From Octopus bimaculoides (lineage: Eukaryota): a DNA stretch of 53,956 nucleotides. The translations under genes were made by a program, and so were the position numbers. Below the pieces are notes generated by a model. That model had not been told where the DNA came from and did no database searches. It saw only the letters and a list, made by a program, of their open reading frames with translations. Position 1 is the stretch's first letter. Each line of letters begins with the position of its first letter. The DNA lies in contig NC_068982.1 of assembly GCF_001194135.2 (NCBI RefSeq), positions 15,016,338-15,070,293 of the forward strand, given 5' to 3'. Below are positions 7,033 to 53,738 of this stretch, one piece after another.

Positions 7033-7067
<35 letters not shown>

Positions 7068-7580: not shown

Positions 7581-8019
7581 ATCGACTGGTTCCTTTAATC
7601 CTCAGTCCCTTTTTTTTTAGCCCACACACCCTCCACCTCTCATGCTAGTTAACATTACACATCCAACAGATATATGTCTTTGTACCTTTTTAGCCTTCAC
7701 AGATTTCTCTGCTTTGTCTCTCTATCATGCAACATCTCTCCTGAACTATTCGGTAATACCTGCTTTATATATACACACACATACACACATATAGACAATC
7801 TTTGCTTATGTGTGTGTATTTACCTGTATCTATATACATTATGCACAAACTCATACACACACACACACACACATTAGGTTTTATTACTTCTATAGACCTC
7901 AGATTGGGAATCACTTTGTTGAGCCATGTGCAAAAATTCCCCTCCCCTCACTTCTTTCTGTCTGTATATATACACATACAGAGAGAGAGATGTTTATTTA
8001 CGTGGATAGGGCATACACA

Positions 8020-8067
<48 letters not shown>

Positions 8068-8417
8068 CACGCAGTTATACTTGCATACACATACAGCCAC
8101 ATATAAGTGTATACACATACATAAACACACGCTGAACGCAATAAAGCTAAACAGACATAAAAACCTTTGGAAGAAGTCATGAAATACTGAGAGATAAGGC
8201 AAGATCCTGTTCTTTACAGGTATCAGTGACTTCCAAACATCAAACTAATGTTATCATAGCAAATCAGAATGAAACAGAAGACATGTTTGCTTGATACTGT
8301 TAATGTTGATGGGTATCACATGATATTTATTTCCTGTAAATTATTTTATTATTCCCAGTTATGTTCATTTTGTATGTGGTTCGTTAATTCTGTTCCTATT
8401 TTACATTTGTTTTGCAG

Positions 8418-8576
8418 GAATTGAAAGAAGCTGAAGAAAAAAAGCATGATTGCTCAGGGAAAGAAAACAGAGCTCCATCCAAAATCAATCACAAAGAGGA
8501 GTTAAATCATAACCAAAATAAAGATGTGGCCTTAACAAAACCTTCAGAGCCTGTACAAGAATCTAGATCTATAAAG
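8418..8576 (+). CDS. SLC39A13: ZIP13 internal exon (cytoplasmic loop between TM3 and TM4), phase 0-0
   Basis: tttgcag acceptor and aag|gttggt donor. 159 nt open frame ELKEAEEKKHDC...PVQESRSIK. The terminal RSIK matches the ZIP13 exon end that precedes VSGYLNL in vertebrates. Confidence 0.8.
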
Positions 8577-8984
8577 GTTGGTGAAGAATAAACGGTTTAA
8601 TACACACTTCCTAAATGTGGTCAAAATTGGTTCCTGAGACCCATAATACCCTCTTCTCTCCAGTCAATTGTCCAGTGTGCATGTGCCTTATGATGGCACT
8701 GTAGACAATGTAAAATATATCATGCATATATATGTGTGTGTGTGATATGTAAGCATGAGTAAACAAGAGAGACAGAGACAGACAGGAACAAGGAAAATTC
8801 CCCTTGTATTTGAATACTATGCAAATATTCTTTTAAAATACTTTTCATTTAATTTTTCCAAAATTTCATTGTTTTCCATGCTTACAGTTGAAGAAGTCTC
8901 AAACATATGGTTTATATTCATTTAAAGAAGAAGAAAATGAAGATTGTGAAGTTAATAATTGTTTATTATTAACAACAAATTGAT

Positions 8985-9078
8985 CATCTTCACTTACAGC
9001 TGTTTCTATTAATACTCAATAAACATTAAATTTACGTTTATATGACATGAGCACAATATCATCAGAGGGAAAAAGATG
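8985..9078 (-). ncRNA. Type-I hammerhead ribozyme-like motif with long stem II
   Basis: Minus strand reads CUGAUGA, a 52-nt pairable stem II, GAA, palindromic stem III ACAGCUGU, then A. The cleavage triplet is GUA. Stem I pairs AG(U)GAA..GAUG with CAUC..UUC(C)CU. Confidence 0.6.
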
Positions 9079-9123
9079 TACCTTTGGATGCTATATATGT
9101 GTTTGTGAATTCATTTTAGCAGA

Positions 9124-9164
<41 letters not shown>

Positions 9165-9177
9165 CACACACATAAAC

Positions 9178-9404
9178 TCCAAATTGAGGGAGTGGAGCAG
9201 GTAAAATTCAGGCTACCTATGTTTCCTAGATAGTAGATCCTCTGATGTAATAATTACTCAACAAGGGGGTATTCAGCTAGATATTTTCGACCTAATGAGT
9301 AGCTAGTTAAATACCCCTCATTGAGTAATTATTACATCAGAGGATCTGCTATCTAGGAAACCTATGTAGCCTGATTTTTACCTACTCCACTTCCTCAATT
9401 TGGA
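9178..9404. repeat. Fold-back palindrome (about 105 bp arms) containing a degenerate hammerhead core
   Basis: 9178-~9283 is the reverse complement of ~9300-9404 at roughly 85-90% identity by eye. CUAAUGA (9292-9298) and GAAACCUAUGUA (9357-9368) lie on the + strand. Confidence 0.85.
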
Positions 9405-9679
9405 TTTTTATTTGCATTCGTAGTAACTCAAGTTGCTAAACGTAAGCTATAAAAAAAGTTTTTCACTTTATCAAAGTTCGAATTGGGAAAAGCTTACAAC
9501 CTTTGATTCTTATAAATTATTATTGTTCCTCTGCATTGTTTATTTTACCTACTTTGGACTACTTGAAGCTTACAAGCTTCCTCCATTTAGATCCTTGGAT
9601 CTTATAATTACATGTGTGTCTGTGTGTTAAATGAGACAACAAAGCCGAGGCTGTGTGGAATTTATAAAGGGAAAGGTAG

Positions 9680-9725
9680 TCTTACAGCTGTTTCTGGGAT
9701 ATTAGGGATATCCCTTCATCAGAGA
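9680..9725 (-). ncRNA. Minimal type-I hammerhead ribozyme-like motif
   Basis: Minus strand: UCU-CUGAUGA-A-GGGAUA(UCCCUAA)UAUCCC-A-GAA-ACAGCUGU-A-AGA. Confidence 0.6.
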
Positions 9726-9755
9726 TGATATGAGAGAGTTAACTAGAGGGAAATA

Positions 9756-9798
<43 letters not shown>

Positions 9799-9879
9799 AA
9801 TAAAAGGGTAAAGGAATATTAATTTATTAATAAATTAATAATTAATAATTTTTACCAAGCACTTCGGTATGTAAACACC

Positions 9880-10217
9880 NNNNNNNNNNNNNNNNNNNNN
9901 NNNNNNNNNNNNNNNNNNNNNNNNNNNNNNNNNNNNNNNNNNNNNNNNNNNNNNNNNNNNNNNNNNNNNNNNNNNNNNNNNNNNNNNNNNNNNNNNNNNN
10001 NNNNNNNNNNNNNNNNNNNNNNNNNNNNNNNNNNNNNNNNNNNNNNNNNNNNNNNNNNNNNNNNNNNNNNNNNNNNNNNNNNNNNNNNNNNNNNNNNNNN
10101 NNNNNNNNNNNNNNNNNNNNNNNNNNNNNNNNNNNNNNNNNNNNNNNNNNNNNNNNNNNNNNNNNNNNNNNNNNNNNNNNNNNNNNNNNNNNNNNNNNNN
10201 NNNNNNNNNNNNNNNNN
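9880..10217. other. Assembly gap (N), likely hides a ZIP13 exon
   Basis: N run inside the 8577-17956 interval where the TM4 exon is expected. Confidence 1.
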
Positions 10218-17630: not shown

Positions 17631-17956
17631 CAGGCTTCCATTGAATAGTTTGGAGAGGTTGTAGTAGAAGTCACTTAGCCAAACTGATGCACAACTGAAA
17701 TAGAACTTGAAACTACAGGGTTACAAAAGAAACTATCTATTCACACAGCTATGCCTGCCACTATGTTTAATAATAACACTATATCTTACATTTCAAACCA
17801 TAAAAATGTCCTTTTGAAGTTGTTGCATTTTAGATTTCAGATTTTGACTCTTTCATATATATTCAACCTGTTTAATTCTTCTTTTTTTCCGATTGACATT
17901 AAAGTGATTGTCAGAAAATTTTCAACTTTAAGCACTTAACTTTCCTTTTTATTCAG

Positions 17957-18070
17957 GTTGGAATAATAACAACATTTGCAATCCTGGTACATGAAATCCC
18001 TCATGAAGTTGGGGATTTTGCCATATTACTGCGTTCTGGTTTTGACAGGTGGAAAGCTGCAAAAGCACAG
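17957..18070 (+). CDS. SLC39A13: ZIP13 exon with the LIV-1 TM5 metal motif, phase 0-0
   Basis: attcag acceptor and cag|gtgagt donor. Translates VGIITTFAILVHEIPHEVGDFAILLRSGFDRWKAAKAQ, with the HEIPHE motif and FDRW-AAK-Q typical of ZIP13. Confidence 0.96.
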
Positions 18071-18121
18071 GTGAGTACGGGAATACAATATCGTTCAAAA
18101 ATCATTTATCACCAAATACCA

Positions 18122-18450
18122 TCCTCATCATCATTTAACATCCATTTTTGATGCTGCCATGGGTTAGACAGTTTGACAGTTCAACAGGAGAGCTACACCA
18201 GACTCCATTTGTCTGTTTTAGCATGGGTTCTATAGCTGGATGCCCTTCCTAATGCCAACCACTTTACAGAGCATACTGGGTGCTTTTTATGTGGTACCAG
18301 CAGGGTCACCAAATATCCTGCAAGACAAAGACCGCTCACCTGAGAGAGGGAGTGGAACCAAGGGAAGTGGCTATGAGCCATGTGAGAGGTTAGAGTCTAA
18401 TAGAGGAACAGAGATAGAGGGAGTACTTGGCTACCCCAGGGGGACATCAA
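18122..18450 (-). mobile_element. SINE family B copy
   Basis: Begins (cat)n-ttaacatcc on + and contains gctggatgcccttcctaatgccaacc. Confidence 0.7.
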
Positions 18451-22703: not shown

Positions 22704-23025
22704 TATATACCATTTACTAGTTATTCTTTTACTACGTTATTGATTTTTAGAATAAGGTGTTTATGATATATTTATTTTCAAGAGAGTATGAATTACATTC
22801 TTCATTATTGAATTATTTAGTAGTGGTTTTTCTCTAAATTATATACACACACACACATATATATAGCTTCTTCCAGCCAAATTACCCCCTTAAGACTTTG
22901 ATGATACTGAGGTTATAAATGAAAAAGCAAAGAATTAAAAAGATGTCACAATTTTAATGTAAATATGAGCAGTTTTCATTTCTGATTTTTTTTTGATTTT
23001 TTCTATCTTAATATATATATTTCAG

Positions 23026-23125
23026 GTATGAAAACAGCTTGGATTCTACCGTTTACCTCTGGAGGCTTTATTTATATTGCTCTTGTGTCCATTGTTCCAG
23101 AACTTGTTGAAGAAACAGAACCAAA
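23026..23125 (+). CDS. SLC39A13: ZIP13 exon (TM7), phase 1-2
   Basis: tttcag acceptor and aa|gtacgt donor. Translates (G)[32 protein letters not shown](K). Confidence 0.96.
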
Positions 23126-23184
23126 GTACGTATATACTTTTTTTATATTTTTAGTTCATTTTTTAATCTTTTATTATTTATCTT

Positions 23185-23386
23185 TTACCTGTTTCTGTCA
23201 TTAGACTGTGGTCTTGCTGGGGCACCGCTTTAAGGAATTTTAGTCAAATGAATCAACCCCAATATATATATATATATTTTTTGTTTTTAAGGCTGGTACT
23301 TTTTCTATCAGTCTCTGTTGCTGAACCGCTAGGTTATGGGGATGTAAATATACCAGTACCAATTGTCAAGTGGTGGTGGAGGGACA

Positions 23387-27656: not shown

Positions 27657-27800
27657 GGTGCTTTTACATCATGTCATTCTGGTGCTTTTTATGTGATGCT
27701 GCATGGGCGCTTTTTATGTGGTGTCGCACAGGCATTTTTATGTGGCACTGCACAGGTGCTTTTACATGGCACCACATGGGCACTTTTACGTAGCACAACA
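27657..27800. repeat. ~22-bp minisatellite derived from the SINE family B internal unit
   Basis: About six diverged ggtgcttttatgtggcaccaca units. The same unit occurs at ~38950-39080. Confidence 0.7.
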
Positions 27801-28586: not shown

Positions 28587-29455
28587 NNNNNNNNNNNNNN
28601 NNNNNNNNNNNNNNNNNNNNNNNNNNNNNNNNNNNNNNNNNNNNNNNNNNNNNNNNNNNNNNNNNNNNNNNNNNNNNNNNNNNNNNNNNNNNNNNNNNNN
28701 NNNNNNNNNNNNNNNNNNNNNNNNNNNNNNNNNNNNNNNNNNNNNNNNNNNNNNNNNNNNNNNNNNNNNNNNNNNNNNNNNNNNNNNNNNNNNNNNNNNN
28801 NNNNNNNNNNNNNNNNNNNNNNNNNNNNNNNNNNNNNNNNNNNNNNNNNNNNNNNNNNNNNNNNNNNNNNNNNNNNNNNNNNNNNNNNNNNNNNNNNNNN
28901 NNNNNNNNNNNNNNNNNNNNNNNNNNNNNNNNNNNNNNNNNNNNNNNNNNNNNNNNNNNNNNNNNNNNNNNNNNNNNNNNNNNNNNNNNNNNNNNNNNNN
29001 NNNNNNNNNNNNNNNNNNNNNNNNNNNNNNNNNNNNNNNNNNNNNNNNNNNNNNNNNNNNNNNNNNNNNNNNNNNNNNNNNNNNNNNNNNNNNNNNNNNN
29101 NNNNNNNNNNNNNNNNNNNNNNNNNNNNNNNNNNNNNNNNNNNNNNNNNNNNNNNNNNNNNNNNNNNNNNNNNNNNNNNNNNNNNNNNNNNNNNNNNNNN
29201 NNNNNNNNNNNNNNNNNNNNNNNNNNNNNNNNNNNNNNNNNNNNNNNNNNNNNNNNNNNNNNNNNNNNNNNNNNNNNNNNNNNNNNNNNNNNNNNNNNNN
29301 NNNNNNNNNNNNNNNNNNNNNNNNNNNNNNNNNNNNNNNNNNNNNNNNNNNNNNNNNNNNNNNNNNNNNNNNNNNNNNNNNNNNNNNNNNNNNNNNNNNN
29401 NNNNNNNNNNNNNNNNNNNNNNNNNNNNNNNNNNNNNNNNNNNNNNNNNNNNNNN
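28587..29455. other. Assembly gap (N)
   Basis: N run. Confidence 1.
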
Positions 29456-33229: not shown

Positions 33230-33404
33230 NNNNNNNNNNNNNNNNNNNNNNNNNNNNNNNNNNNNNNNNNNNNNNNNNNNNNNNNNNNNNNNNNNNNNNN
33301 NNNNNNNNNNNNNNNNNNNNNNNNNNNNNNNNNNNNNNNNNNNNNNNNNNNNNNNNNNNNNNNNNNNNNNNNNNNNNNNNNNNNNNNNNNNNNNNNNNNN
33401 NNNN
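33230..33404. other. Assembly gap (N)
   Basis: N run. Confidence 1.
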
Positions 33405-38799: not shown

Positions 38800-39126
38800 T
38801 CATCATCATCATTTAACATCTGTTGTCCATGCTGGCATGGGTTGGATGGTGTGACCAAAGCTGGGGAGCTGCACCAAACTCCAATCTGGTTTAGCATGGT
38901 TTCTACAGCTGAATTGCCTCCTTAATGCCAACCACTTTACAGAATGTGCTGGGTGCTTTTATGTGGCCCTGCATGAATGCTTTTACATGGCATCACATGG
39001 GCACTTTTATGTGGCACCACACCGGTGCTTTTATGTGGTACCTTTACATGACATTGCACTGGCACTTTTACATGGCACCACCAAGAGTGCTTTACACCAC
39101 CAGAAGGATAAATCAAGCAAGATACC
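38800..39126 (-). mobile_element. SINE family B with 22-bp minisatellite expansion
   Basis: (cat)n-ttaacatc start and repeated ggtgcttttatgtggcaccac units. Confidence 0.65.
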
Positions 39127-41748: not shown

Positions 41749-43257
41749 ATGATCAACTCATGACTCATGTTTTAAGCATTTAATAAGCGAAAAGTGGCCA
41801 CGTGGCTTGACAGGACCACAACAGAGGGGTAAACAGCTTGGTAACATCTTAGCTTGTTACTATGGAAACAGGCACCTATATGTCTGTGGCTTTTGATTGG
41901 CTAAAATTACGCAAAATTTGCAAACTTTAAAAGCTATTAATTCATTATTTATTGATTTATGGCAAAAATGAAGGATCCAGTTAAACTGATTCACAAAATC
42001 AGATAATTTGACATTATTTTAAAATTCTGCATGCAAAAACATATAAGATACGGGTATTCTTCTTCTTGGGACAAATTCTTTGTTGACCAATGTTATTCTC
42101 ATCGTAGTTTACAAATCCAAGCATGAAAACGTTACTCAACTTTGGAGTTTTGGAGACAGATGTCCCATTTTCACACACACACACATACACACATGAATGC
42201 ATAAATGTACATATAAACTTATATTTGAATACATACATCCACATGCACCTATAATATATTAATGATGTACACAAATACATGACAGGTATACATAATACTG
42301 AAATATGCATAAAGTAAACACACGTAGACAAATATATTAATATAGCAAATTTTTTTTAAATAATAAAAATATACAAAACACTATAGAAATAAATGAAGCG
42401 ACAAAAGAAACAATAAGATGATACATGTTGATTTTATTAGGTATTCCTGTTTATTTAGAAACCTACAATGAACAGGTCTTTTCACAGATGTTTTACTATA
42501 AATTTCATAGGGTACAACCTTAAAGTTGAGTCTGCTAAACACAGGAAATTTCTCTCACTATTGGCTAAAAATACTTTTTTTTTTTTTTAATTTTTATTTT
42601 TATACCTCTGTAACTTTTTCCTCCAATTTTTTCTCCACAACATCATACCTTCATAGCAATAGGAGTGGAAAACTACATTAATAAAGCTGATTTTCAGATT
42701 TTTTACTTCCTTTTACAAAATGCAGATCTTGTGAATCAGTTTAACTGGATCTAAAATGAATTTTACGTCAACGATTACCATACAAAACTATACCAAAAGA
42801 CCCAATATGAAATCAACTGGAACAAAAATTAAAGAAATTGAAAAGTAGCTGCCAAACTAAAAAGATGTAATTTTTCTTTTTACAACTTCTTCCTGTGTAA
42901 TCTTAATCAATGTAATCTAAAATATATCACTGGAAAATTTCATTAAAAAATACAGATTTTAAAGAATGTTATGGATACACTTCTTTCATCATACTCATTT
43001 ATCATTCCCACCTTAATTATCAAGCAAAGGCAAATTTTAAACATTTCCCACCTGCATAAGGAGGGAGCATCTTCCTTTCTTATGCCTTTGCTGTGGATGT
43101 TATTGTCTCGTCCAATGGCATGTCTTACTTTGTGAAAAAATACCTTCTAGTGCAATCTTTGAATATTTGTAGAAGTGAGTATCGAATTCCAAATAAAATA
43201 CATAGTCAAAGAATATAAGTTAAGTTCAATTATATTTAAAAAAATAGGGGACTCATT

Positions 43258-43505
43258 TTGTTCGTGACGGCATGTGTTGTCAACTGTAAACCCTAGCCCA
43301 AACCAAATGAAATACTGGCGGAATTCTGCTTTACGCACGCCATACAACCCCTCGTAATTTTTTTTTATTTTGGAGGATTTTTAGAAAATGTTTACAAATT
43401 TGTATTCTACACACGGGAATTCATACAATTATTCAAAAACCAAAACGAAAACATTTTCAGTGCGTGATTTAAGGCCTATTTAGTTGTTATCTTTAGCACA
43501 TCTCA
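43258..43505 (+). repeat. Dispersed repeat, copy 2
   Basis: Collinear with 41500-41748, roughly 80% identical by eye. Confidence 0.8.
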
Positions 43506-43741
43506 GCTGTCGCAGGGAATAAAACATTTAAAGTCTTCAGGACCCCTGGCCTTCGTATGAAAGTGAGAAAAAAGAAAAAGTGATGGGGGGGGGGCAACTA
43601 ATTAAATGTCGTCACCAGTTCTACCAAGTAATAAATCCCTATTAAACGTTGAGTATTTTATTACATAGTTATCTAGATCAGTGGATATATGGAATGAATG
43701 GAACATCAGAGAAAACACTGCAATATTTCTTCTACTTCTAA

Positions 43742-43905
43742 GGCGGCGAGCGGGCAGAAGCGTTAGCATGCTGAGCAAAATTCGATTTAACCTTTCATCC
43801 TTTCGGGGTCGAAAAAATAAATACCTGTTGAACACTGGGGTAGATGTAATCGACTGATCTTGTCCTCGAAATTGCTGGTCGTGTACTAAAATTTGAAACC
43901 ATAAT
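43742..43905 (+). mobile_element. Internally deleted family C SINE just upstream of the CFAP46 promoter
   Basis: aggcggcgagcgggcagaagcgttagc head and ctttcatcctttcggggtcga body. Confidence 0.7.
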
Positions 43906-44149
43906 TTCTTCTGGTTCTTTACGATTTGAATTTAAAAAGAAAACTTCAAATGTATTAATATATCAGGTAATTGCCACATTTTAACCTGTTCTAATTATAT
44001 CATTATCGTTCCATTTATTTACATTCCTCGTCATCTTGTAAAGTTTCGCCAATAAGGAGATTTAGATGTTTATTTTATTCTTTTTCGCGACACCTTGAAT
44101 TCCAGATTTTATTTCATGGTTTTTATTTTAACATCGGTCTTACTCAGGG

Positions 44150-44215
44150 GACGTCACTTCAAACGCCTTCGTTACATAGCAACAAAGAGTTAGCTGCCCT
44201 TCCATGTAAACAAAA
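44150..44215 (+). promoter_or_regulatory. Ciliary-gene promoter module: CRE-like GACGTCA, RFX X-box GTTACATAGCAAC, forkhead GTAAACAAAA
   Basis: Motifs at 44150-44156, 44171-44183 and 44206-44215, 215-280 nt upstream of the CFAP46 ATG, in a locally CpG-richer patch. Confidence 0.7.
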
Positions 44216-44428
44216 GTACTCGACGCTCAACAAGTCAGATTATTGAAACTTTAAATTATTTGATTGTGTCTGAGTATGAAGTTGTTCGAAAGCTGATATT
44301 TATTTTTCATTTCATTTAAAGTTTAGCAAAAGTAGGTGATTAATTTTATTTTATTTTATTGCTGTAAAAGGATTTGTTTATATTTTTACTATTAATTCAA
44401 TGTCACATGAAATTTAGGAACGATCAAA

Positions 44429-47400
44429 ATGGATGTAGAAGTAAAATATTTGATGGATTATGTATCGAACTGTAACGATATAGAAGAATGTCAAAAATAC
44501 ATTCGGAGAGCCTTTGATATAATTTTGCAAATAGATCACTTACAGTTTACAACAGATCTTCCACATGCAACATCAACCAACATTTTAATACAATGCTCCG
44601 ATTTGGCTATTAAGAATGCTGCTTATGATATTGCAGAGGAATGTCTCAATCTCTTTTTTACGAGAGCAGTTGCAACTGATCCCAATAGATGTGTGGCATA
44701 TTTATATATGGCGCAGTTATCGGCACCTACGAATATTTTTGATACTTCACATTTAGAAAAAGCGGGACAACATATCACGAGAGCAATCAACTTAGCCGTT
44801 AAAAATCCCGCTTTGCAGAATGAAATCTATAACGCTTCATTACTTTATTGGAGGTTATGCCATCCATTTTTGCGTCCCGGTTTCTACCAATACGTCGTAA
44901 ACACTTTACATGTTATTGTCAAAGCTATTAATGATCTGATCGACATTAACTATAACTGGAAAGCGATATTGTTCATAACGCTTATTGAAATGTATTTAAA
45001 AACTGGCAGGAAATCTGAAGCTGTTGAAATTGCTAAAACAGCAATTGTTTTTGTTAAAAAATATGCTTTACCTTTCTTTAAAAGAATATTTGAACTTATT
45101 GTTCGTTATCAACTGGTTGATTCCATTATCAACCAAGCACAAATTAAAAATTCGCCTGAGCTGCTTATTTTTTACACTATAATGAAGTTGAATTACACTT
45201 CTGAAACTAAAGACATCCGCAGAGAAATAAATAAGGTAATGGTGCAGCTTAACATAGCAGCTCAAAGTAGTGATAACTTTGGATATGTTGAAGAGTCAGC
45301 TCACATTAGCACGTCTCCTCGTGAAGGCAAGAAAAGGACTCCTAGGGACCTTATCAGACATAAATCTCGATATGTTTCAGAAGACAATTTAGAGCGACAA
45401 TACTTATTACTTGAGTTGACACGTCTGTGTCTAAAGTATAATTTAGTACCATATGCACAAAAGTGTATTCAAGCAGCTAAGAAATCTTCCAATTATAAGA
45501 AAGGGTTTTACACTCAGTTTAAGTTTGCAGAAAGTGAAATAATGGTAAAATTACTTGGTGTCAACCAAGAATCCTATAGCAGAAAATCAGTTAAAATTCG
45601 ATTAAAAGCAATAAAACTTTGTGAAGAAAACATTACCATAGCTATGCAACAGCATGATGCTCATTCTGTACAGTGTGGATGTGTCACTCTGTGGAATCTT
45701 TCTCTTCCATTATTGCAGTCAAATTTACGTTGTCATTTATCTAAACCATTAACATTGGTTGCACAGGCACTTGAAGACATTCAGAGTCTATTTATTCAAC
45801 TTCGGTGCCAGGTTCATCGAGAATTAGCATTGTGTGAGGAAAAGGAACATATAAAAATTGCCATAAGCCACTTAAAAAAAGCTATTGCTCTGGATGGTTC
45901 AAAAGTGTATCACAATCAACTGAGTTTGAAATTGAACCGCTTGACATTACTATCAGAGATGTATTTCAACCCTGACAATCCAGAGGATATTGCTGGAAAG
46001 ATCATTGAACAGGCTCGAGAGGTAAAATCACTTGGAACAAAGGAAGGTATGCGGGCCCTTCTTATAAAAGCAGGAATCACATTGGCACCAGATGCATTCC
46101 AAACAGTTCTTGATAGTGAAAGTTTGCTTTATGAAAAGGTCAAGCTTTCACCAAATACGACAGATCAGCTTGCTGAACGTGTTCAAAAATATAATGCTAA
46201 TATAAAAAAAATTGATGGTCATTTACTTAGAATTGGAGACAGATGTGATTATATTCGGATGCATCTTTGGGCAGATTTATCAAAGGTTGCTCGGAAGCAT
46301 GGTGCTTGGGATGTATGCCGTACAGCAGCCATGTTTTGTCTTCTTTATGATGACAATAGATGGCTAGCAGCATACAAAGATGTTAGTGTTACTGCTACAG
46401 AATGCAGTTCAGCTGACAGTACATTGAAATCTGAAGAGAATATGGAAGAAATTTCAACTTCCAGAAAGAAAAAAAGTACGATTGATAAATTGCCCCTCAG
46501 TGAACGGGAACATGTTCGTCTTTTAGCAGAGATCAACTTTATTCAAGGAGAAGCTTGTTTAAACTTGCTTTACCAAGAAAACGTAAAACTAAATGATTTG
46601 CCAGTTTATCCTCAAGATTATAGCAAACATGGTAAAAATTATGAAGCAGCTGATCCAGCTGAAGACAAAGACTGGGAACTATACTGCCAGTGGATTCAGC
46701 AAATGAATTCCAAAATTACTTCTAGTTTTCTTCGAGGTCTTATTCTTGGATACAACCTGAATGACAGTTATATTGTTGGTAATGCTGCTACTTATCTTTG
46801 GAATTACAACCTCCATATTATTGAACAAAATCGTCAATCTGAAATTGTTGGTTGTTTTGCAACTCTTTTGGAAGGTATGCAAAAAGTTGATTATAGTGAA
46901 TTTATTATCTTACTTATAAATATCTGTATAAATTTGGCTACAGGACTTATGATGCCATGGATGCCTTCAATTCCAGATAGAAATACTGAATCACCAATTC
47001 GACTTTATGCATATCCAGAAAAATCTAATGTGCCAAAAACTCAATCAAAACTTCCACTGGTGTTAATTCCACCTCAAGCTTTACCTGATCTGAAAAGAGC
47101 CATAGAAGTTTGTGAATATGCTATTGATATTACTAATAAAAAAAAGCAAATTTTTTCCATACCTTTACCTATAAAAGCCTCATTGTTAAAAACTTGGGTC
47201 ATAGCTAAGCAAATGTCCCAACAGCAGATTAACAGGAATTCAATTAGAGATGATGATCCTGAGAAACAATTATCACAAATTATTGTTGATATAGAAATGT
47301 ATACACACACAAAAAATGGGGTTATGGAATTCAAAGACCTATTGCCATTGCCAAACTTAGTTACCACTGTACTGAAACATCACTGGAGAGATGATTTCCT

Positions 47401-50400
47401 TAAACTACAGCTGTGCACTCAATTAGCTGAAATTCTCTATAACTATAAAAATTATGAGCTTGTGATAAAAATTGCAAAAGCAGTGACAGCTTCATATTTG
47501 ACAGAAACATCTGTCGTTTGTGCAAAAGAGAGGACTGGAAGTGGCATAAATAATAACCACATAGAAGAAAAAGTTAGTTATTTGTTTCTTTTGATGGGCC
47601 AAAGTACGACTGAAAATATGGAAGGGCAAACTGATAGGTGGGAAGCTATAAATAATTTTATAAAAGCTGCAGAGTTTTCCATTCCATCACATAACTATCA
47701 CATTTTGATGAAAGCTGCCAAAAATTATTGGAATACAATTCTACCTTTGATTAATATTAGCTCTGAAAGAAAATCTCTGAAAGCATCTCTTCAAGAAATT
47801 CTTTCCTATATATCCAAAGTCACAAACAAAATCACAGAGTTAAACAGTATTGAAAAAACCAATTCCTATGTGCCTGATCCTAACCGAATCACATTTTATG
47901 GCTACATTGGGAGAAATTGGGAGAGTGACCCTGTTCTGATTAATGATAATGATGATGACCAGAAGCTCCAGGTCTCTTTATATAATGTCTTATGTGATAG
48001 CTATGAAGACAGCAATGACTGGAAAACGGTTATTAAAATCCTCAACACTGCCATAGCTGACCTGCCACACAGTTATCATAAAATTCAGTTATTCAGACGA
48101 AGAATTATGGTCAAAGCAAAATTAGGCGAAAACATGTTAATGGATCTCCAAAGATTTCGAGATGAGAAAGAAGATTTTGTTGCAGTGATGTGGCGAGACA
48201 TAGCTTTACACAGCAATAAATTATCAGAACAGTGTATTGCATATCAAAAAGCAATTGAAAGTCTGTCGAGTAAAGAATACAACTGGCAGAAAATTGATTA
48301 TCTCCTTGAATTCAGTGAGTGGCTTTATACATACCAAATGCCTGAACAAATTGTTGTGGATCAAATAGAATGGGCTATAGATATTCTTATGAGCATGACT
48401 CCTGAAATAAACAGAGAAAACCTAGGAAATAAAACACCAAGGATTAGTGCTTTTCAATTTGTAGAGGACACTACTCTTCAAGACACTGAAAATCTTCCTA
48501 ATTCCAACATTAATGAAAATGTTGAGCAGAGGGACGTTCATTTTTATGTTCCTCAGGAGAAAGAAATTATTATTGGAGCTCCACTTCAAGACTGTACTGA
48601 AGCTACAGGAAGAATGAACAATGTGAAACAACTGAATTATTTGATCAAAAGTTATGTGTTTTTATGTGCAATTTACACTCCTGCATCTCCTTTTTATCAA
48701 AAATATTCTCTCTTTGCTTACTCACTTACAATAAGGCTGTGGCAAGTGTGCATTGCTGCTGCATTAAACTTTTATTTAGAAGTCCCAAAGACCAATTCAG
48801 TTAATGTTAAAGACTCTGCAGTCTCAAACAAAATTGATGGAACATCAAAACAAAAGGTAAAAGACAAGAAAGAAAAAAACGAAAACTGTATATCTCCAAC
48901 AAAAGAAAAGAATAAAAAGAAATTCTTAAGCACTAATGTTTCTTCTCTGACTTCAGAAGAATGGGCTGTGTTTGAAGTACCATGTGATTTAGAAGAAATT
49001 TTTACCCATCAAAGTTTAGAGACTACAGGAATTAATGAAAAAACCTTCCCTGCTCCAATGATAAGCTTGTATTACTTTGATAAATTGGTAACTAATCTTC
49101 AAAATATTGGGTTTCACCATTTAACTTTACCAGTGTTAGCTTTGAACCATATCATAGCCTCATTTGTAGCACATTCTAAATCCTTTGTTCTTTATACTCA
49201 TTGTAAAAGAATGGAATTGTGTGCTGAACTCAATTTGCCACAGTGTTCTTCCTTCCATGAAAACGCCATCAATCAGGTGTCTGGTATTGCTCCTAATGAG
49301 TTGATTGAAATAAGAGAGAAATTTTATGAATACGTTCAAGAAAGGAATAACTATTGTAATAGATCAGACATTTCATCGGAAGCAGAAAACGAAAAGCTAC
49401 TTCACAAATGTCATTTAGGGCATTATTTTCAAGACACTTTTGTCTACCAAATTTGGACAAAGACTGCTGAAGCATTGATCGAGCAAACACATTACCAGCT
49501 TGCCAGGAAATACTTAAGTGAGGCCTATAAGTTTGCTGTGGGTTTCAAAGATATATTCTACCAAGGAAAATTATGCTTTTTAAAAGCCAAACTTGCTTCT
49601 GTTGAAGCTCAATACAAAGATGCATTTGATTTATGTATGAAAGCTGAAGATATCATGGTTGGTGATATGGAATATTGGTATGAAATAGCAATGTTAAAAA
49701 CTGATGCTGCTCTTCACACTTTTCCTAAAAATGGATATGAATTTGTTGAACAGTTTCTACAAAGAATCATTAAAGAATTTGAAAAGTTATCTTTGATCAG
49801 ACCAAACCAAGCTCTCGGTTATCGTTATACAATTGCTTTAATTCAAGCCAAACTTGGTGAAGTTCAAATTAAATACTATATAGGCCGATATAATGACCTT
49901 CCTTTGGCTCCTCTACAAGAAGTATTTCAGTCACCACTGAATTATTTTAATATTTCAACTGAATTTCTTCTCAAGCATAAGTATACAAAAGCTGCTGTCA
50001 AAGTCATGCATAACCATGCCAAATTACTACATCAAATTGCTCTGGCAACCACAAATGACACTAACAGTTTGCAGTTATATTATCTACATTCTGTAAAGGT
50101 CTTTACTCAAGCCATAGAACATGCTCGAGCTATATTTTATGATATAATGATGATACTTCCTAAAGATTTTAATTTAAGCTTACCTATTCATCGAGAATTG
50201 TCTAATTTGCAGAGAAGTTGTGCTGAAGTTATGGTTGAAATCCAAACAATCCAAACAAATCATGAAATTGAAAAAATACAGAAGCATCAACATGATATTG
50301 AAAGGATAAAACTAGAAGAGGAGTTTATCAACAAATCTCCTGATTGTTTGGAAACTGAGAAAGAATGGAAAAGAAGCAGGCAGTGGATTGCTAATGAAAT

Positions 50401-52660
50401 TCTGTCCCAAGCAACTTCGGCACATACTCTTGCTAGAACAATACAGTGGATTAAATCTAGAAGTTTGCTTATCATTGGCAAATGTTTGCTCAATTTGTCA
50501 TTCTTAAAACAAGCAGATCCGTCCCTATTATGGTCATTGTTTGATATAGAGCCAGATACTGAAAATGTAGAATCTGATGAAAGCAAAGAAGGAAAAAGTA
50601 CATTTTTTAATCACTTAAATCAAATTCCAAAATTATCCAGGAAAATTAAAGAAATTAAATGGAAGGAGGACATTTCCTTGTGTTATTTTACTCAAGCAGC
50701 TGAATGTTTAACTCAAGCTTTAAATACTGCTTTTCAACTTAAACGAACAAATGTAATTATGCAGGCTTCATACGAACTTATGAACTCAATTGGTCAATTT
50801 GATGTTATTACTTCATCTCATTTCCTTGCTTTGTATCAAAGTTGTCAGGCATCTTGTCATTTAAAGAAATTGCTCAGAATCAGCCAACCAAACCCTTATA
50901 GTTGTCGCTTGGCTGCACTTCTGCATCAAAGAAAACACATGTTAAATAATTATGTTGAGAAAAACCTCATCTGCACTGATACTTTTTCTTCGGTAACAAA
51001 TTCATTGGAAACAGAGTGGCAGGCTTGGAAAAGTACAATGATTTTAACAAATCATTTTGATGCAGCAAAGGAATTCCCTTTCAACTTCAACTTTATAGTT
51101 CTACAGCATTCACCTGACAAAAATTTTATATTTTATAGTCTCCTGGACAAGTACAAATCAGTCAAAAGTGCAGCAGCCCCTAAACAACCAATATTAAGTA
51201 CAACACAGAGTATATTAAAACGATCTTCTCTGGCAAAATTCAGAGTTAATCCCAATAAACTACACCAGCTTCTAAACATGTTAAAGCTTTATAAAAAAGA
51301 TGTCAGGCAAGCATTGCTCAAAAGAGAATTCCAAATAAAAAATCAGTCTGACTATAAAAACATGCTTGATACTTTAAAATTTGAACCTTGTGATTCAACT
51401 ATATCAGAAAGTCTTGTGATTGAGAATGATGATGAGTGGATGCAGGAAAAATTTGAAGAAATTGTTGCCTTAATGGAAGATTATTTTGCTGCTGTACTTC
51501 AGCCACTGCGAACAGCTTTGCAACAGACTTTTGCACCATCATGTTCGAGCACTGTTTTTAAAGAAAGTTCGGACAATGGTTGTATTATTATTTTAGCTGA
51601 TTCAGACTTGCTTGAACTTCCTCTGGAATCTTTGAGTGTATTTCGTGAATTTGAAAATATAATATCTGTGTCACGAGACATTTCTTTGCAATTATTTTAT
51701 CATAGATTCCACCAAGACGAAGTCTCTGAGGAAACTAAAGACAAAAAGAAAGATAAAAAACAACACCCACAGCCACCACCACAACCAACCCGTATACCAG
51801 TAAGTAAAGAAACTGGCAAGAAACGGAAGAGAGAGCTTGTTGATCATGTAATGCCACCATGGGGTCAATCTATTGATACAGATTCATTCAAATACATGGT
51901 AGATGTCAATTATGAATTTAATGAACCTGAAGAAAATGATCTCTGTAAGATTTTTAAATCTCTCTTAGCTGAATATGAACACTATTATACATCCCAATGG
52001 ATTGGACTTAGTGGAGATATTCGAAATGCAAGCACTGGAGAATGGGAAACATATCTAAATGAAAGTGGATCTTTCATTTTCCTTGCTCCTTACAAAATAA
52101 CATCTTATTTAAATCCAATAAAAATTCCTGCTTTTAATATTTCAAACTGTATGTTGGTATGTCAGTTTGATTTAAGTGAAAATTATTCAAGCTATAGACA
52201 CCTTTCCCTTCATGATGCTTTAAAATCAGATGAAATTTTATCTTTGGAAAATCCAGTTTCAATAGCATTACTGCTTAGTCTAGCAGGAGTACATTGCATC
52301 ATGGGTAATCAATGGTCATGCCAACTCAATCACAACATAAAGCAGTTGAGGACAGCCATGAAATGTTTGTTGTCTCATGGGTATTCTACTGGGGAAACAC
52401 TTCGACATATTCAGGTACCACTTTTGAAGATGGAGACAAAACGTAGCACAGAAGACAATCTTAACAAACAAGATAAAAAGTCTGGTAAAAAACCTTCTAA
52501 ATCTGATAAGAAAAAAGATGCGAAATTAGGTGTAACAGCTAGTTGTACATCTATCAGTCCTATAAAATCCTGTACACTAATTGATGACAAAGAAGTAAGA
52601 CCTAACTGGTTTAACATGGTGTGCTATGGACTACCAAATTTATTTGTGACACAGACTTAA
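44429..52660 (+). CDS. CFAP46: Cilia- and flagella-associated protein 46 (TTC40), single uninterrupted ORF of 2743 aa
   Basis: N-terminal motifs (YNASLLYWRLCHPFLRPG, LIEMYLKTGRKSEA, CGCVTLWNLSLPLLQ, HLWADLSKVARKH, NAATYLWNYNLH) and the C-terminal YGLPNL match CFAP46 as recalled. The length equals a full-length orthologue and there is no stop or frameshift. Confidence 0.93.
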   Translation: MDVEVKYLMDYVSNCNDIEECQKYIRRAFDIILQIDHLQFTTDLPHATSTNILIQCSDLAIKNAAYDIAEECLNLFFTRAVATDPNRCVAYLYMAQLSAPTNIFDTSHLEKAGQHITRAINLAVKNPALQNEIYNASLLYWRLCHPFLRPGFYQYVVNTLHVIVKAINDLIDINYNWKAILFITLIEMYLKTGRKSEAVEIAKTAIVFVKKYALPFFKRIFELIVRYQLVDSIINQAQIKNSPELLIFYTIMKLNYTSETKDIRREINKVMVQLNIAAQSSDNFGYVEESAHISTSPREGKKRTPRDLIRHKSRYVSEDNLERQYLLLELTRLCLKYNLVPYAQKCIQAAKKSSNYKKGFYTQFKFAESEIMVKLLGVNQESYSRKSVKIRLKAIKLCEENITIAMQQHDAHSVQCGCVTLWNLSLPLLQSNLRCHLSKPLTLVAQALEDIQSLFIQLRCQVHRELALCEEKEHIKIAISHLKKAIALDGSKVYHNQLSLKLNRLTLLSEMYFNPDNPEDIAGKIIEQAREVKSLGTKEGMRALLIKAGITLAPDAFQTVLDSESLLYEKVKLSPNTTDQLAERVQKYNANIKKIDGHLLRIGDRCDYIRMHLWADLSKVARKHGAWDVCRTAAMFCLLYDDNRWLAAYKDVSVTATECSSADSTLKSEENMEEISTSRKKKSTIDKLPLSEREHVRLLAEINFIQGEACLNLLYQENVKLNDLPVYPQDYSKHGKNYEAADPAEDKDWELYCQWIQQMNSKITSSFLRGLILGYNLNDSYIVGNAATYLWNYNLHIIEQNRQSEIVGCFATLLEGMQKVDYSEFIILLINICINLATGLMMPWMPSIPDRNTESPIRLYAYPEKSNVPKTQSKLPLVLIPPQALPDLKRAIEVCEYAIDITNKKKQIFSIPLPIKASLLKTWVIAKQMSQQQINRNSIRDDDPEKQLSQIIVDIEMYTHTKNGVMEFKDLLPLPNLVTTVLKHHWRDDFLKLQLCTQLAEILYNYKNYELVIKIAKAVTASYLTETSVVCAKERTGSGINNNHIEEKVSYLFLLMGQSTTENMEGQTDRWEAINNFIKAAEFSIPSHNYHILMKAAKNYWNTILPLINISSERKSLKASLQEILSYISKVTNKITELNSIEKTNSYVPDPNRITFYGYIGRNWESDPVLINDNDDDQKLQVSLYNVLCDSYEDSNDWKTVIKILNTAIADLPHSYHKIQLFRRRIMVKAKLGENMLMDLQRFRDEKEDFVAVMWRDIALHSNKLSEQCIAYQKAIESLSSKEYNWQKIDYLLEFSEWLYTYQMPEQIVVDQIEWAIDILMSMTPEINRENLGNKTPRISAFQFVEDTTLQDTENLPNSNINENVEQRDVHFYVPQEKEIIIGAPLQDCTEATGRMNNVKQLNYLIKSYVFLCAIYTPASPFYQKYSLFAYSLTIRLWQVCIAAALNFYLEVPKTNSVNVKDSAVSNKIDGTSKQKVKDKKEKNENCISPTKEKNKKKFLSTNVSSLTSEEWAVFEVPCDLEEIFTHQSLETTGINEKTFPAPMISLYYFDKLVTNLQNIGFHHLTLPVLALNHIIASFVAHSKSFVLYTHCKRMELCAELNLPQCSSFHENAINQVSGIAPNELIEIREKFYEYVQERNNYCNRSDISSEAENEKLLHKCHLGHYFQDTFVYQIWTKTAEALIEQTHYQLARKYLSEAYKFAVGFKDIFYQGKLCFLKAKLASVEAQYKDAFDLCMKAEDIMVGDMEYWYEIAMLKTDAALHTFPKNGYEFVEQFLQRIIKEFEKLSLIRPNQALGYRYTIALIQAKLGEVQIKYYIGRYNDLPLAPLQEVFQSPLNYFNISTEFLLKHKYTKAAVKVMHNHAKLLHQIALATTNDTNSLQLYYLHSVKVFTQAIEHARAIFYDIMMILPKDFNLSLPIHRELSNLQRSCAEVMVEIQTIQTNHEIEKIQKHQHDIERIKLEEEFINKSPDCLETEKEWKRSRQWIANEILSQATSAHTLARTIQWIKSRSLLIIGKCLLNLSFLKQADPSLLWSLFDIEPDTENVESDESKEGKSTFFNHLNQIPKLSRKIKEIKWKEDISLCYFTQAAECLTQALNTAFQLKRTNVIMQASYELMNSIGQFDVITSSHFLALYQSCQASCHLKKLLRISQPNPYSCRLAALLHQRKHMLNNYVEKNLICTDTFSSVTNSLETEWQAWKSTMILTNHFDAAKEFPFNFNFIVLQHSPDKNFIFYSLLDKYKSVKSAAAPKQPILSTTQSILKRSSLAKFRVNPNKLHQLLNMLKLYKKDVRQALLKREFQIKNQSDYKNMLDTLKFEPCDSTISESLVIENDDEWMQEKFEEIVALMEDYFAAVLQPLRTALQQTFAPSCSSTVFKESSDNGCIIILADSDLLELPLESLSVFREFENIISVSRDISLQLFYHRFHQDEVSEETKDKKKDKKQHPQPPPQPTRIPVSKETGKKRKRELVDHVMPPWGQSIDTDSFKYMVDVNYEFNEPEENDLCKIFKSLLAEYEHYYTSQWIGLSGDIRNASTGEWETYLNESGSFIFLAPYKITSYLNPIKIPAFNISNCMLVCQFDLSENYSSYRHLSLHDALKSDEILSLENPVSIALLLSLAGVHCIMGNQWSCQLNHNIKQLRTAMKCLLSHGYSTGETLRHIQVPLLKMETKRSTEDNLNKQDKKSGKKPSKSDKKKDAKLGVTASCTSISPIKSCTLIDDKEVRPNWFNMVCYGLPNLFVTQT

Positions 52661-52674
52661 AAAAGGAAAAGAAA

Positions 52675-52680
52675 AATAAA
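52675..52680 (+). promoter_or_regulatory. Candidate CFAP46 polyadenylation signal (a second AATAAA lies at 52933-52938)
   Basis: AATAAA 14 nt after the stop codon. Confidence 0.35.
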
Positions 52681-52769
52681 CATTACTATTCTATATTTCT
52701 GAAATGAGGAATTTATATTATGCATTCTGCTTTTATTAGTCAGGCTAATGTCCTGATCTGAATTGTTGC

Positions 52770-52896
52770 TTTCACTATACATTTCAGCTGCTGTATTCTC
52801 CAGCCTTCTTCAGGTATCTTCTGCTGTACAACAACTGAGTTCAACACAAGATTCTTGAAGAAGGCCGGAGCATATGATAGCTGAAATGTAGTGAAA
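52770..52896. repeat. Fold-back palindrome of two opposed hammerhead-like motifs downstream of CFAP46
   Basis: Arms 52770-52814 and 52854-52896 are near reverse complements with a 39-nt spacer. Each arm reads (C/U)UGAAGA-A-GGC...GCU-GAAAUG on its own strand. Confidence 0.8.
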
Positions 52897-53276
52897 TCAC
52901 ACCAATCTGACTCATATAAACGGTATATGTAAAATAAATGTTGATTTAAAAATTCTCAGGGAAGATGAAACACATTTTAAGTGAATTTTAATGATCACTT
53001 CTTTCTCTCATATAATTCCACTCACATCCAGAATGCATTATCGGAATCAACTCCAGAACATGACTGGTATGTAATTTTATCAATCCCTGAAGAAACAAAT
53101 TTAACCTCAGCAAGATTTGAACTCAAAACATTAGAGGCTGTAACTAACCGCAACAATTTTGTCAGTCCACCACCAAAAGCTTCAATAGATCTTCTGACTT
53201 TGATAAATATATTGTTTTCGTTTTATTGTTAATTCATCTTTAAGAGTAAAACAAAATAATAAAACAGTCTAATTTG

Positions 53277-53470
53277 TATATATAAAACTGCTTGTTTGTT
53301 TGTCTGTTTGTTATCACTCAAAAATCAGTTAACCAATCATGTTCAAATTTGGCATGAAAGGTTCTTAGACTCAGCTATACATTGTTTTCAAATTTGGACC
53401 TATATTCTCTTAAGGGACAAGAAACAGTCCTCATTCAACATAAATTTGGCAGACAAGAGTGATAGGTGGC
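53277..53470 (+). mobile_element. Possible Helitron-like non-autonomous 5' end
   Basis: tatataaaactg, a (TTTG/TCTG)n microsatellite, then aaccaatcatgttcaaatttggcat, a layout seen in Helitron-type repeats. Resemblance only. Confidence 0.35.
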
Positions 53471-53738
53471 TCACATAATTTGGAATTTCTCCGTTTTGAT
53501 GGGGATTTTTCAGATTTATTTTTCACAGTGCCCTTGGAAATAATCCGGAGCATCTTTTTAACAAAAACAAAAACTGGTTCTTTTAACCCCACCCTCCCAA
53601 TCTTCCCCTCTCCAGATCGATTTTGGTCGACTTTGTGGGCACTATGTGCGATGATTTTTTTTTTGGAGCACTACGTACTTAAAAATTATTGGAGAAGCCT
53701 TTCTGATAAAAAAAAAAAAATGCAAATATTTTCAGACA

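Follow-up and report, generated by a model that had tools for sequence, protein, structure and literature searches.

In Octopus bimaculoides, CFAP46 is encoded by a single coding exon of 8232 nt, a state that comparison with outgroups marks as derived, and it lies away from the PACRG-like gene that adjoins it in other molluscs and in a hemichordate. The frame is apparently the functional and sole CFAP46 gene of this species. It probably arose by retroposition of a full-length CFAP46 mRNA and subsequent loss of the parent gene, that is, by retrogene replacement, which would make it an orphan retrogene. All positions refer to the window, the whole stretch of 53,956 nt that was analysed.

A single open reading frame encodes octopus CFAP46

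44429..52660, + strand: single coding exon of CFAP46, 2743 amino acids plus stop, with an ATG start (Pfam, orthology, DNA and RNA contigs, dN/dS)

Among the open reading frames of the window longer than 152 codons, the CFAP46 frame is the sole real one; apparent frames at 28.5–29.6 kb were rejected, as they are the translated N of an assembly gap. At the ORF's own base composition, a stop-free run of 2743 codons has a chance of approximately 1e-93, and the longest such run in the shuffled ORF was 140 codons. From each of three DNA runs, which belong to three different studies, one genomic contig of 8922 nt was obtained; it extends from the upstream flank to 52717, shows 0 differences from the window, and has single-copy depth. 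The ORF contains 0 tandem repeats, against 51 TRF rows (approximately 35 distinct arrays) in the upstream 44.4 kb, and high-copy repeats begin approximately 30 nt past the stop codon. Scanning the window for Rfam families and tRNA genes gave no matches.

Based on sequence similarity, the product is the O. bimaculoides orthologue of CFAP46. The Pfam domain TPR_CFAP46_N (PF25439) was matched at residues 23–153 (E = 7.8e-13; score 48.9 bits, cut-off 27). The octopus protein aligned at 100% query coverage with mollusc, hemichordate, echinoderm, and vertebrate CFAP46 (E = 0), and at 100% coverage with cnidarian CFAP46 as well; this alignment over the entire length with the protein of other animals shows the frame to be free of introns and frameshifts. 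With a distant cephalopod protein as the query, CFAP46 was the only family returned. The preliminary description of this locus had reported an 8232-nt ORF without stop, frameshift, or intron, kept free of repeats amid repeat-rich DNA, and both points are borne out by the full-length alignment, the joint-free RNA contigs described below, the three DNA runs, and the repeat counts.

CFAP46, a large protein of motile cilia, belongs to the C1d projection of their central apparatus and is known in Chlamydomonas and human (PMC2867295, PMC11651342). The octopus protein resembles this CFAP46 (FAP46, TTC40) as a full-length orthologue with the N-terminal TPR domain of the family, and differs from it only in gene structure and locus; its location in the octopus axoneme is predicted.

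CFAP46 is transcribed without splicing

44171..44183, no strand assigned: X-box-like (RFX-type) palindrome GTTACATAGCAAC, from a pattern scan, 23 nt upstream of the mRNA 5′ end at ~44206
44206..44428, + strand: 5′ UTR, 223 nt, unspliced; transcription start at ~44206 from the X15 contig
52658..52683, + strand: A-rich tract TAAAAAAGGAAAAGAAAAATAAAC with AATAAA, beginning at the stop codon (from sequence)
52661..53287, + strand: 3′ UTR, ~627 nt, mostly repeat-derived (from RNA contig ends)
53258..53263, + strand: poly(A) signal AATAAA, 24 nt 5′ of the common RNA contig end at 53287

CFAP46 is transcribed as a single unspliced mRNA of ~9.1 kb, from ~44206 to ~53287. RNA contigs of 10122, 7536, and 6982 nt are collinear with the DNA and contain no joint inside CFAP46. 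The RNA contig X15 begins at 44206, directly after CAATGAAGTCGCAGGGTTGGG, which is the PacBio Iso-Seq NEB 5′ primer (bioRxiv 10.1101/2022.05.17.490813); because of this preceding primer, 44206 is taken as the mRNA 5′ end. At the other end, the RNA contigs X3 and X19 stop together at 53287, while a DNA contig continues beyond. The DNA word depth of the 3′ UTR is 5–14 times that of the ORF.

Several candidate introns were rejected. An 82-nt intron in the 5′ UTR (GT at 44336, AG at 44417) is not spliced, because four RNA contigs (X15, X19, X25, and X3) cross it without a joint throughout 44206–44515. Read-mapping joints across the gene (e.g. 44360>52659 and 38309>52656) were read as repeat artefacts, since their sides comprise only 18–24 nt of seemingly low-complexity sequence and none has GT..AG ends. 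The raw-read RNA runs X35–X37 had hardly any CFAP46 coverage and were uninformative on ends and splices.

At ciliary genes, RFX factors bind X-box-like motifs of this type. The motif GTTACATAGCAAC is unchanged in O. sinensis (L001, 9763) and in a third octopod (L012, 115), and a deep-branching cephalopod (L002) carries the X-box-like motif GTCACTTAGCAAC 121 nt upstream of its ATG; the background is approximately one such site per 3.9 kb. Local alignment of the octopus and L002 promoters was no better than that of shuffles, the X-box-like motif being the only shared part. RFX factors may bind and control octopus CFAP46 at this putative site. The A-rich tract at the stop codon is kept in the three octopods and missing in L002, and it could be either a proximal poly(A) signal or the relic of a retroposed tail.

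The ancestral gene is exon-rich and paired with a PACRG-like gene

To place the single exon, the gene was compared with CFAP46 of outgroup species. In Lottia, CFAP46 spans 30.2 kb with at least 49 coding exon HSPs (at least 48 introns), and in Haliotis it spans ~100 kb with at least 58 (at least 57 introns). Intron positions are common to the two snails: 26 of the 38 mapped Lottia positions match Haliotis, where 4.9 would be expected at random and the maximum in 2000 trials was 13. Moreover, an intron after residue 16 is common to Lottia, Haliotis, Mytilus, and the hemichordate Glandiceps. Inside the octopus ORF, 45 Haliotis intron positions were mapped, and octopus has 0 introns. Because CFAP46 of the snails is exon-rich with common intron positions, and its first intron is also common to the mussel and the hemichordate, outgroup comparison shows the intronless state of octopus to be derived. 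The alternative raised in the preliminary description, namely that CFAP46 is also single-exon in non-cephalopod molluscs, is contradicted by these exon counts, and the comparison of exon numbers proposed there sets multi-exon outgroup molluscs against the single octopus exon.

The genomic neighbourhood has changed as well. PACRG-like lies head-to-head with CFAP46, 485–1122 bp apart, in Lottia, Haliotis, Mytilus coruscus, and Glandiceps, and the locus tags of the two genes are adjacent in Patella. This head-to-head pair is conserved from hemichordate to molluscs and is absent at octopus CFAP46, where the PACRG-like neighbour has not been retained: PACRG-like was not found in the 44 kb upstream, in the 10 kb downstream, or in O. 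sinensis, and a search for its homologues gave no octopus protein among the 120 matches listed. Instead, octopus CFAP46 sits between a ZIP-family transporter gene and an RrnaAD-family methyltransferase gene. The ZIP-family gene lies upstream on the + strand, as identified by motif and Pfam; two of its exons (within 17903–18148 and 22986–23201) are ~4.8 kb apart, in agreement with the kb-scale introns previously attributed to this neighbour. ZIP13, the name given to it in the preliminary description, is a candidate assignment within the LIV-1-type ZIPs. No relic CFAP46 exons were found in the octopus flanks.

The intronless gene is old, constrained, and without a second database copy

O. sinensis has a single-exon CFAP46 at the same locus with the same downstream neighbour, and four cephalopod lineages have kept an intact ORF. 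The event is older than the divergence of the three octopods (O. bimaculoides, O. sinensis, and the third species). Comparison with the most distant cephalopod sequence shows saturation at synonymous sites (pS 0.757), and the event is therefore old; a much deeper split among cephalopods is probably younger than the event as well. Among the contigs of the deep-branching cephalopod (L002–L009), seven have identical ends on at least one side, like the octopus DNA contigs, whereas L007 begins 33 nt past the X-box and terminates in a run of A, which is mRNA-like. These ends are only suggestive of a DNA or RNA origin, and the SNP pattern among the contigs showed no editing signature. As the contigs may be DNA or RNA, an intronless CFAP46 in the genomic DNA of the L002 lineage is a candidate state.

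Among the three octopods, dN/dS was 0.51, 0.29, and 0.34. Selection on octopus CFAP46 is thus purifying, but only moderate; the mean Ka/Ks of human orphan retrogenes is 0.088 (PMC3548309), and the octopus values are higher. With two queries, no second octopus CFAP46 appeared among the protein database matches listed, and each octopus species gave one protein; this copy number refers to annotated proteins, including a RefSeq-type annotation of O. sinensis. It had been proposed that the copy is kept by purifying selection and possibly replaced its parent, with a silent copy at dN/dS near 1 beside an expressed multi-exon paralogue as the opposing scenario. Expression and constraint of the gene, together with the lack of another octopus CFAP46 among those matches, agree with the former and run counter to the latter.

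Retrogene replacement as the favoured explanation

The earlier suggestion of whole-mRNA retroposition or cDNA-mediated loss of all introns is supported by the derived single exon and by the departure from the PACRG-like pair. Of these two routes, we consider retroposition followed by parent loss the probable one. A fully spliced, full-length CFAP46 mRNA would have been reverse-transcribed in the germ line, and the cDNA would have been inserted between the ZIP-transporter and methyltransferase genes, away from the ancestral PACRG-like/CFAP46 locus. The copy would then have gained or evolved a ciliary promoter and taken over the function, and the intron-rich parent would have been lost.

Retrogene replacement has been documented for other genes (PMC5803294, PMC3548309). 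The retrogene SYCP1 of amphioxus likewise has a single coding exon where other animals have many, is common to related species, and is expressed in the germ line; it is also the sole genomic copy and occupies a locus unrelated to the ancestral one, both of which are probable for octopus CFAP46 (PMC5803294). However, its exon is ~3.2 kb, and SYCP1 co-opted the bidirectional promoter of a neighbour (PMC5803294), whereas the exon of octopus CFAP46 is 8.2 kb (mRNA ~9.1 kb) and the gene left a bidirectional pair instead of entering one. Human orphan retrogenes also combine a single-exon focal gene with multi-exon outgroup orthologues, more than two aligned ancestral exons, purifying selection, and no remaining parent (for octopus, among database proteins), although their constraint is very strong (PMC3548309) and that on octopus CFAP46 is weaker.

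Alternative routes to an intronless CFAP46

A less probable, though still credible, alternative is that recombination between a full-length cDNA and the multi-exon ancestral gene removed every intron in place in a single step, and that a later rearrangement cut CFAP46 and its promoter from PACRG-like. Because the mapped transcription start is downstream of the X-box-like motif, a plain mRNA copy would lack the motif; intron loss in place accounts for its presence just upstream of the start. Such a loss would also fit the transcript borders, at which we found no target-site duplication or clear poly(A) relic (flanking direct repeats >12 nt and a terminal A tract are both absent). Consequently, no direct mark of retroposition survives, but this absence does not exclude retroposition, because an event this old would be expected to have lost such traces. 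Furthermore, with a single copy, loss of a parent need not be assumed. Cephalopod genomes are heavily rearranged, and much ancient microsynteny has been lost, so the loss of the PACRG-like neighbour could be a separate rearrangement; a later rearrangement of a gene altered in place would give the same absence at the locus.

On the other hand, intron loss in place requires one conversion tract over the whole 8.2 kb cDNA that replaced a gene of 30–100 kb, and in addition a break within a bidirectional promoter region of 0.5–1.1 kb that hemichordate and molluscs alike have retained. Intron loss mediated by reverse transcription (the Fink model) resembles the octopus case in being RNA-mediated and in removing introns exactly, with the frame untouched. 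In animals, however, it is usually confined to a small number of neighbouring introns, mostly close to the 3′ end, and leaves the gene at its original locus, whereas octopus CFAP46 has lost all introns and its ancestral neighbour. The tunicate Styela clava shows both changes too, the loss of all introns and of the PACRG-like neighbour, which fits one mechanism.

It is unlikely that the ORF is a retrogene duplicate, for example a testis-specific paralogue, whose intron-rich parent still works elsewhere. Many retrogenes coexist with their parents and show testis bias (PMC5470649), the copy search covered annotated proteins, and dN/dS of 0.3–0.5 is somewhat relaxed. Nevertheless, a database that holds the RefSeq-type O. 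sinensis annotation gave only the single-exon octopus protein with either query, and this single-exon gene is, over its full length, the closest relative of all other CFAP46. Slightly less likely again is that approximately 50–60 introns disappeared stepwise over a long period, through numerous separate deletions or short cDNA conversions. The age of the event (pS 0.757) would have allowed sufficient time, but every intron is gone, UTR introns included, while the adjoining ZIP-family gene retains kb-scale introns, and no intermediate occurs in four cephalopod sequences (of which L002 is a candidate for genomic intronlessness). Finally, the view that the ORF is a processed pseudogene, or stems from contaminating cDNA or faulty assembly, for which the absence of introns is the sole support, is refuted to near certainty by the single-copy genomic contigs that tie the ORF to its flanks in three DNA runs, by a frame open in four lineages against a chance of ~1e-93, and by transcription with defined transcript ends.

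Implications and a parallel in Styela clava

The rebuilding of a gene from its own mRNA is a known kind of event, and octopus CFAP46 is a new and unusually long example. Most functional retrogenes are short, since a long mRNA is rarely reverse-transcribed to completion. If a 9 kb mRNA was indeed copied whole, long kept open, and left as the sole CFAP46, the known size range of retrogene replacement would be stretched, and germ-line reverse transcription in octopus ancestors would have been capable of full-length copies of very long messages. The PACRG-like/CFAP46 pair uncovered by the comparison offers a natural experiment on ciliary gene regulation after a gene has left a shared promoter. In practical terms, the intronless 8.2 kb ORF can be cloned straight from genomic DNA.

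The octopus case is not unique, because CFAP46 of Styela clava (P0032, locus L017) is also single-exon, with one uninterrupted ORF of 8493 nt (2830 aa). This orthologue is likewise not adjacent to PACRG-like and has an X-box-like motif, GTCACTTAGCAAA, ~209 nt upstream of its ATG. It differs in representing an independent tunicate event, and its protein is 30% identical to that of octopus. The regulatory context of CFAP46 in octopus and Styela differs from that in other animals, which matters to users of either gene. We tentatively suggest that the whole CFAP46 gene might repeatedly have been replaced through its own mRNA, in the cephalopod lineage (at least one event) and in Styela (one event), each time escaping the bidirectional PACRG-like pair of the bilaterian ancestor and regaining an X-box promoter; the cephalopod event might then date to stem coleoids or to stem cephalopods. 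If so, octopus CFAP46, with its CDS of 8.2 kb, would rank with the longest and oldest functional orphan retrogenes known from animals.

As a separate observation, the upstream neighbour of CFAP46 in Styela, a WD40/IFT-type gene, is likewise a single ORF.

CFAP46 is encoded without introns in octopus genomic DNA

The ORF listing places one ORF, with an ATG start and 2743 aa, at positions 44429–52660 (+). Its product matches chromosome record CM046602.1 of assembly GCA_001194135.2 at every residue, at about 15.06 Mb. It contains the N-terminal TPR domain of CFAP46 (Pfam) and can be aligned from end to end with the CFAP46 proteins of gastropods, bivalves, an annelid, echinoderms, a hemichordate, and vertebrates (26–35% identity); the closest named database relative is the CFAP46-like protein of Octopus sinensis (89%). 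In humans, loss of CFAP46 leads to primary ciliary dyskinesia (PMC11651342, PMC2867295). The chance of 2743 stop-free codons, given the ORF's own base composition, is approximately 1e-93; the shuffled ORF reaches at most 140 codons, and no other stop-free run within the upstream 44 kb exceeds 152 codons. As the preliminary description had stated, the ORF is free of repeats, unlike its surroundings: Tandem Repeats Finder reported 51 rows, representing roughly 35 distinct arrays, within 1–44428 and none in the ORF. Long "ORFs" at 28.5–29.6 kb were rejected as translations of an 869-N run, the largest assembly gap, which yields spurious six-frame ORFs and a 15% GC bin at 28–30 kb.

Assembly gaps (N runs; 1724 nt in total)
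1777–2118
9880–10217
28587–29455
33230–33404

Genomic DNA runs from three separate studies, one run per study, gave one 8922-nt contig apiece, extending from upstream of 43900 to 52717 with even single-copy depth and 0 differences from the window. These contigs join the ORF to its flanks; thus, the intronless form exists in genomic DNA, and cDNA contamination is ruled out. The RNA contigs likewise cross the gene unspliced, which, together with the ORF and the DNA contigs, confirms the earlier claim of one intact intronless ORF.

RNA contigs aligned to the window (coded runs X3, X15, and X19)
X3: 42604–52723, 10122 nt, no joint in the gene
X15: 44206–51741, 7536 nt, no joint in the gene
X19: 46306–53287, 6982 nt, no joint in the gene

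The X15 contig start is preceded by CAATGAAGTCGCAGGGTTGGG, the primer used at the 5′ end in PacBio Iso-Seq libraries, so this contig holds a full-length cDNA, and 44206 is a candidate capped end. In two RNA runs the contigs stop at 53287, 24 nt past the AATAAA at 53258–53263, and a DNA contig runs on through this position. A possible 5′ UTR intron (GT 44336/AG 44417) was rejected because it is unspliced in each of four RNA runs. Collectively, the mapped ends and the lack of joints indicate an mRNA of ~9.1 kb without any intron. RNA runs cover CFAP46 very unevenly: the fraction of sampled words present ranges between 1.00 and 0.00, and three deep 2026 runs contain almost none, which indicates tissue-restricted expression. 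Additionally, the X3 contig reaches 1.6 kb beyond the Iso-Seq 5′ end on the upstream side (42604–44205), as far as a poly(T) run; this extension may reflect an alternative start, read-through, or carry-over of genomic DNA.

DNA depth rises 5–14-fold from about 52.6 kb on, and 52690–53500, spanning the 3′ UTR and adjoining downstream sequence, keeps 5–14 times the depth of the ORF. The DNA contigs break at 52688–52722, about 30 nt past the stop codon. The high depth and the breaks indicate that the 3′ UTR consists largely of interspersed repeats. An antisense stretch around 53100–53135 resembles a tRNA B-box. At 52816 and 52859, both in the repeat-derived 3′ UTR, several RNA runs carry G on the sense strand versus A in the genome and three DNA runs; A-to-I editing and polymorphism are the candidates.

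The single-exon state is derived

When the proteins were mapped back to DNA, CFAP46 fell into at least 49 separate pieces over 30.2 kb in Lottia gigantea and at least 58 over about 100 kb in Haliotis cracherodii; a single exon is therefore not the general molluscan state, in line with the earlier proposal. Haliotis shares 26 of the 38 well-defined intron positions of Lottia (random expectation 4.9, maximum 13 in 2000 trials), and the first of these introns, which follows residue 16, is present in both gastropods as well as in Mytilus coruscus and the hemichordate Glandiceps talaboti. These shared positions indicate that ancestral CFAP46 was intron-rich and that the octopus lineage lost all introns. 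In Lottia, a 21–22-residue segment (aa 1349–1370; L011 23757–24118) matches three times in tandem at 100% identity, about 100 nt apart, which represents either small-scale tandem duplication at the edge of an exon or alternative exon copies.

The O. sinensis gene has the same structure as that of O. bimaculoides (8253 nt for 2750 aa), and its downstream neighbor, about 5.5 kb off, is also an RrnaAD-family gene. The two species share one 9.6 kb aligned block (93% identity) that begins roughly 430 nt before the start and ends some 20 nt beyond the poly(A) site.

Octopus CFAP46 lies apart from its ancestral neighbor

The zinc-transporter neighbor with kb-scale introns in the preliminary description is real, as an upstream LIV-1-type ZIP gene (HEIPHEVGD at about 17990; Pfam Zip, E = 2.6e-18). 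The two exons identified are about 4.8 kb apart, and some 21 kb separate the last coding exon from CFAP46, which has the same orientation.

LIV-1-type ZIP exons (motif and Pfam)
17903–18148 (+)
22986–23201 (+), C-terminal exon at about 23.0–23.2 kb

The gene immediately upstream of CFAP46 in Lottia and Haliotis is PACRG-like (Pfam ParcG), in head-to-head orientation. The same arrangement occurs in Mytilus coruscus (485 bp gap) and Glandiceps (582 bp), and in Patella the two genes have consecutive locus tags. The head-to-head pair in two gastropods, a mussel, and a hemichordate indicates an ancient bilaterian gene pair. These ciliary genes presumably share a promoter; our literature search found no paper naming both.

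PACRG-like/CFAP46 pair loci (0.5–1.1 kb apart)
L011 (Lottia): 6687–10001
L014: 2475–10001
L015: 9516–10001
L016: 9419–10001

PACRG-like was absent, by tblastx and tblastn, from the 44 kb upstream and 10 kb downstream of octopus CFAP46 and from the O. sinensis locus, and also from the 1.2 kb upstream of CFAP46 in a distant, deep-branching cephalopod; Lottia against Haliotis, the positive control, matched strongly. Concealment in assembly gaps was rejected because the four upstream gaps total 1.7 kb, too small for a seven-exon gene.

Origin of the intronless gene

The exact loss of ~50–60 introns, along with any intron in the UTRs, suggests that an mRNA served as the intermediate. The derived single-exon state and the lost PACRG-like neighbor support the RNA-mediated intron loss proposed earlier. 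We consider retroposition of CFAP46 mRNA with replacement of the parent gene somewhat the better bet: a single retroposition to a new site would account for the intron loss and the lost neighbor together, after which the copy would have gained a promoter and the parent gene would have been lost. Such replacement is established for amphioxus SYCP1 (PMC5803294), and human orphan retrogenes are established cases of parent loss (PMC3548309). Octopus CFAP46 would be an unusually long case of this known kind. As the main alternative, a full-length cDNA may have recombined with the resident gene, with a later rearrangement. Loss in place would keep the promoter for free, but it requires conversion over a very long tract and a breakpoint within a 0.5–1.1 kb region intact in other animals, and we regard it as rather unlikely. 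Neither a poly(A) tail nor a target-site duplication survives at the CFAP46 borders, so no direct evidence decides between retroposition and loss in place. No relic CFAP46 exons were found in the window flanks.

As for the suggested parent replacement, two database searches found no second octopus CFAP46, with one per octopus species among the annotated proteins. At the level of annotated proteins, this speaks against survival of the parent gene and agrees with that part of the proposal.

Selection and age

Pairwise Nei–Gojobori estimates among octopods
O. bimaculoides–O. sinensis: dN/dS 0.51, dS 0.098
O. bimaculoides–third octopod (L012, 85% aa identity): dN/dS 0.29, dS 0.247
O. sinensis–third octopod: dN/dS 0.34, dS 0.256

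Octopod CFAP46 is under purifying selection, as proposed earlier, of moderate strength (dN/dS 0.29–0.51), and the intron-loss event predates the divergence of the three octopods. In the comparison with the most distant cephalopod (protein P0004, contig L002; 42% aa identity), synonymous change has reached saturation (pS 0.757), and despite this the ORF remains open. The contigs from this animal (L002–L009) have identical ends across runs, resembling the behavior of the octopus DNA contigs; if they are genomic, the event is older than a split that saturates synonymous sites. Its one mRNA-like contig, L007, ends in A9-C-A13, 931 nt past the stop; this tract is at least partly genomic and could be a site of internal priming or a weak trace of a retroposed tail.

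Promoter motif

A 13-nt palindrome, GTTACATAGCAAC, lies at 44171–44183, 23 nt before the Iso-Seq 5′ end. It fits the X-box pattern recognized by RFX factors and is unchanged in two other octopods. In the distant cephalopod, GTCACTTAGCAAC lies 121 nt before the ATG, and L007 starts 33 nt after it. The recurrence of an X-box-like motif near CFAP46 starts across cephalopods is suggestive, against a background in the window of about one such site per 3.9 kb. A wider promoter alignment between octopus and the distant cephalopod was not significant.

A parallel in Styela clava

Styela clava CFAP46 is likewise a single stop-free ORF, exactly 8493 nt for 2830 aa (L017 10001–18493), away from PACRG-like and with an X-box-like motif, GTCACTTAGCAAA, about 209 nt before the ATG. 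Whole-gene intron loss in CFAP46 has therefore occurred at least twice, which makes the octopus case less unique. This suggests that the long CFAP46 message is prone to such loss, and its expression in the germ line would fit. The Styela upstream neighbor, a 1347-aa WD40/IFT-type (WDR19-like) protein, is also encoded by one ORF (4044 nt, L017 3364–7407), giving two adjacent intronless ciliary genes.

Repeats upstream of octopus CFAP46

Short arrays of a 24–25-nt unit (TTTTTATGTGGTGCCGCACAGGCA-like) occur at 27681–27796 and 38950–39042 and probably represent one dispersed repeat family, to which a 66-nt tandem unit at 2247–2397 may be related.
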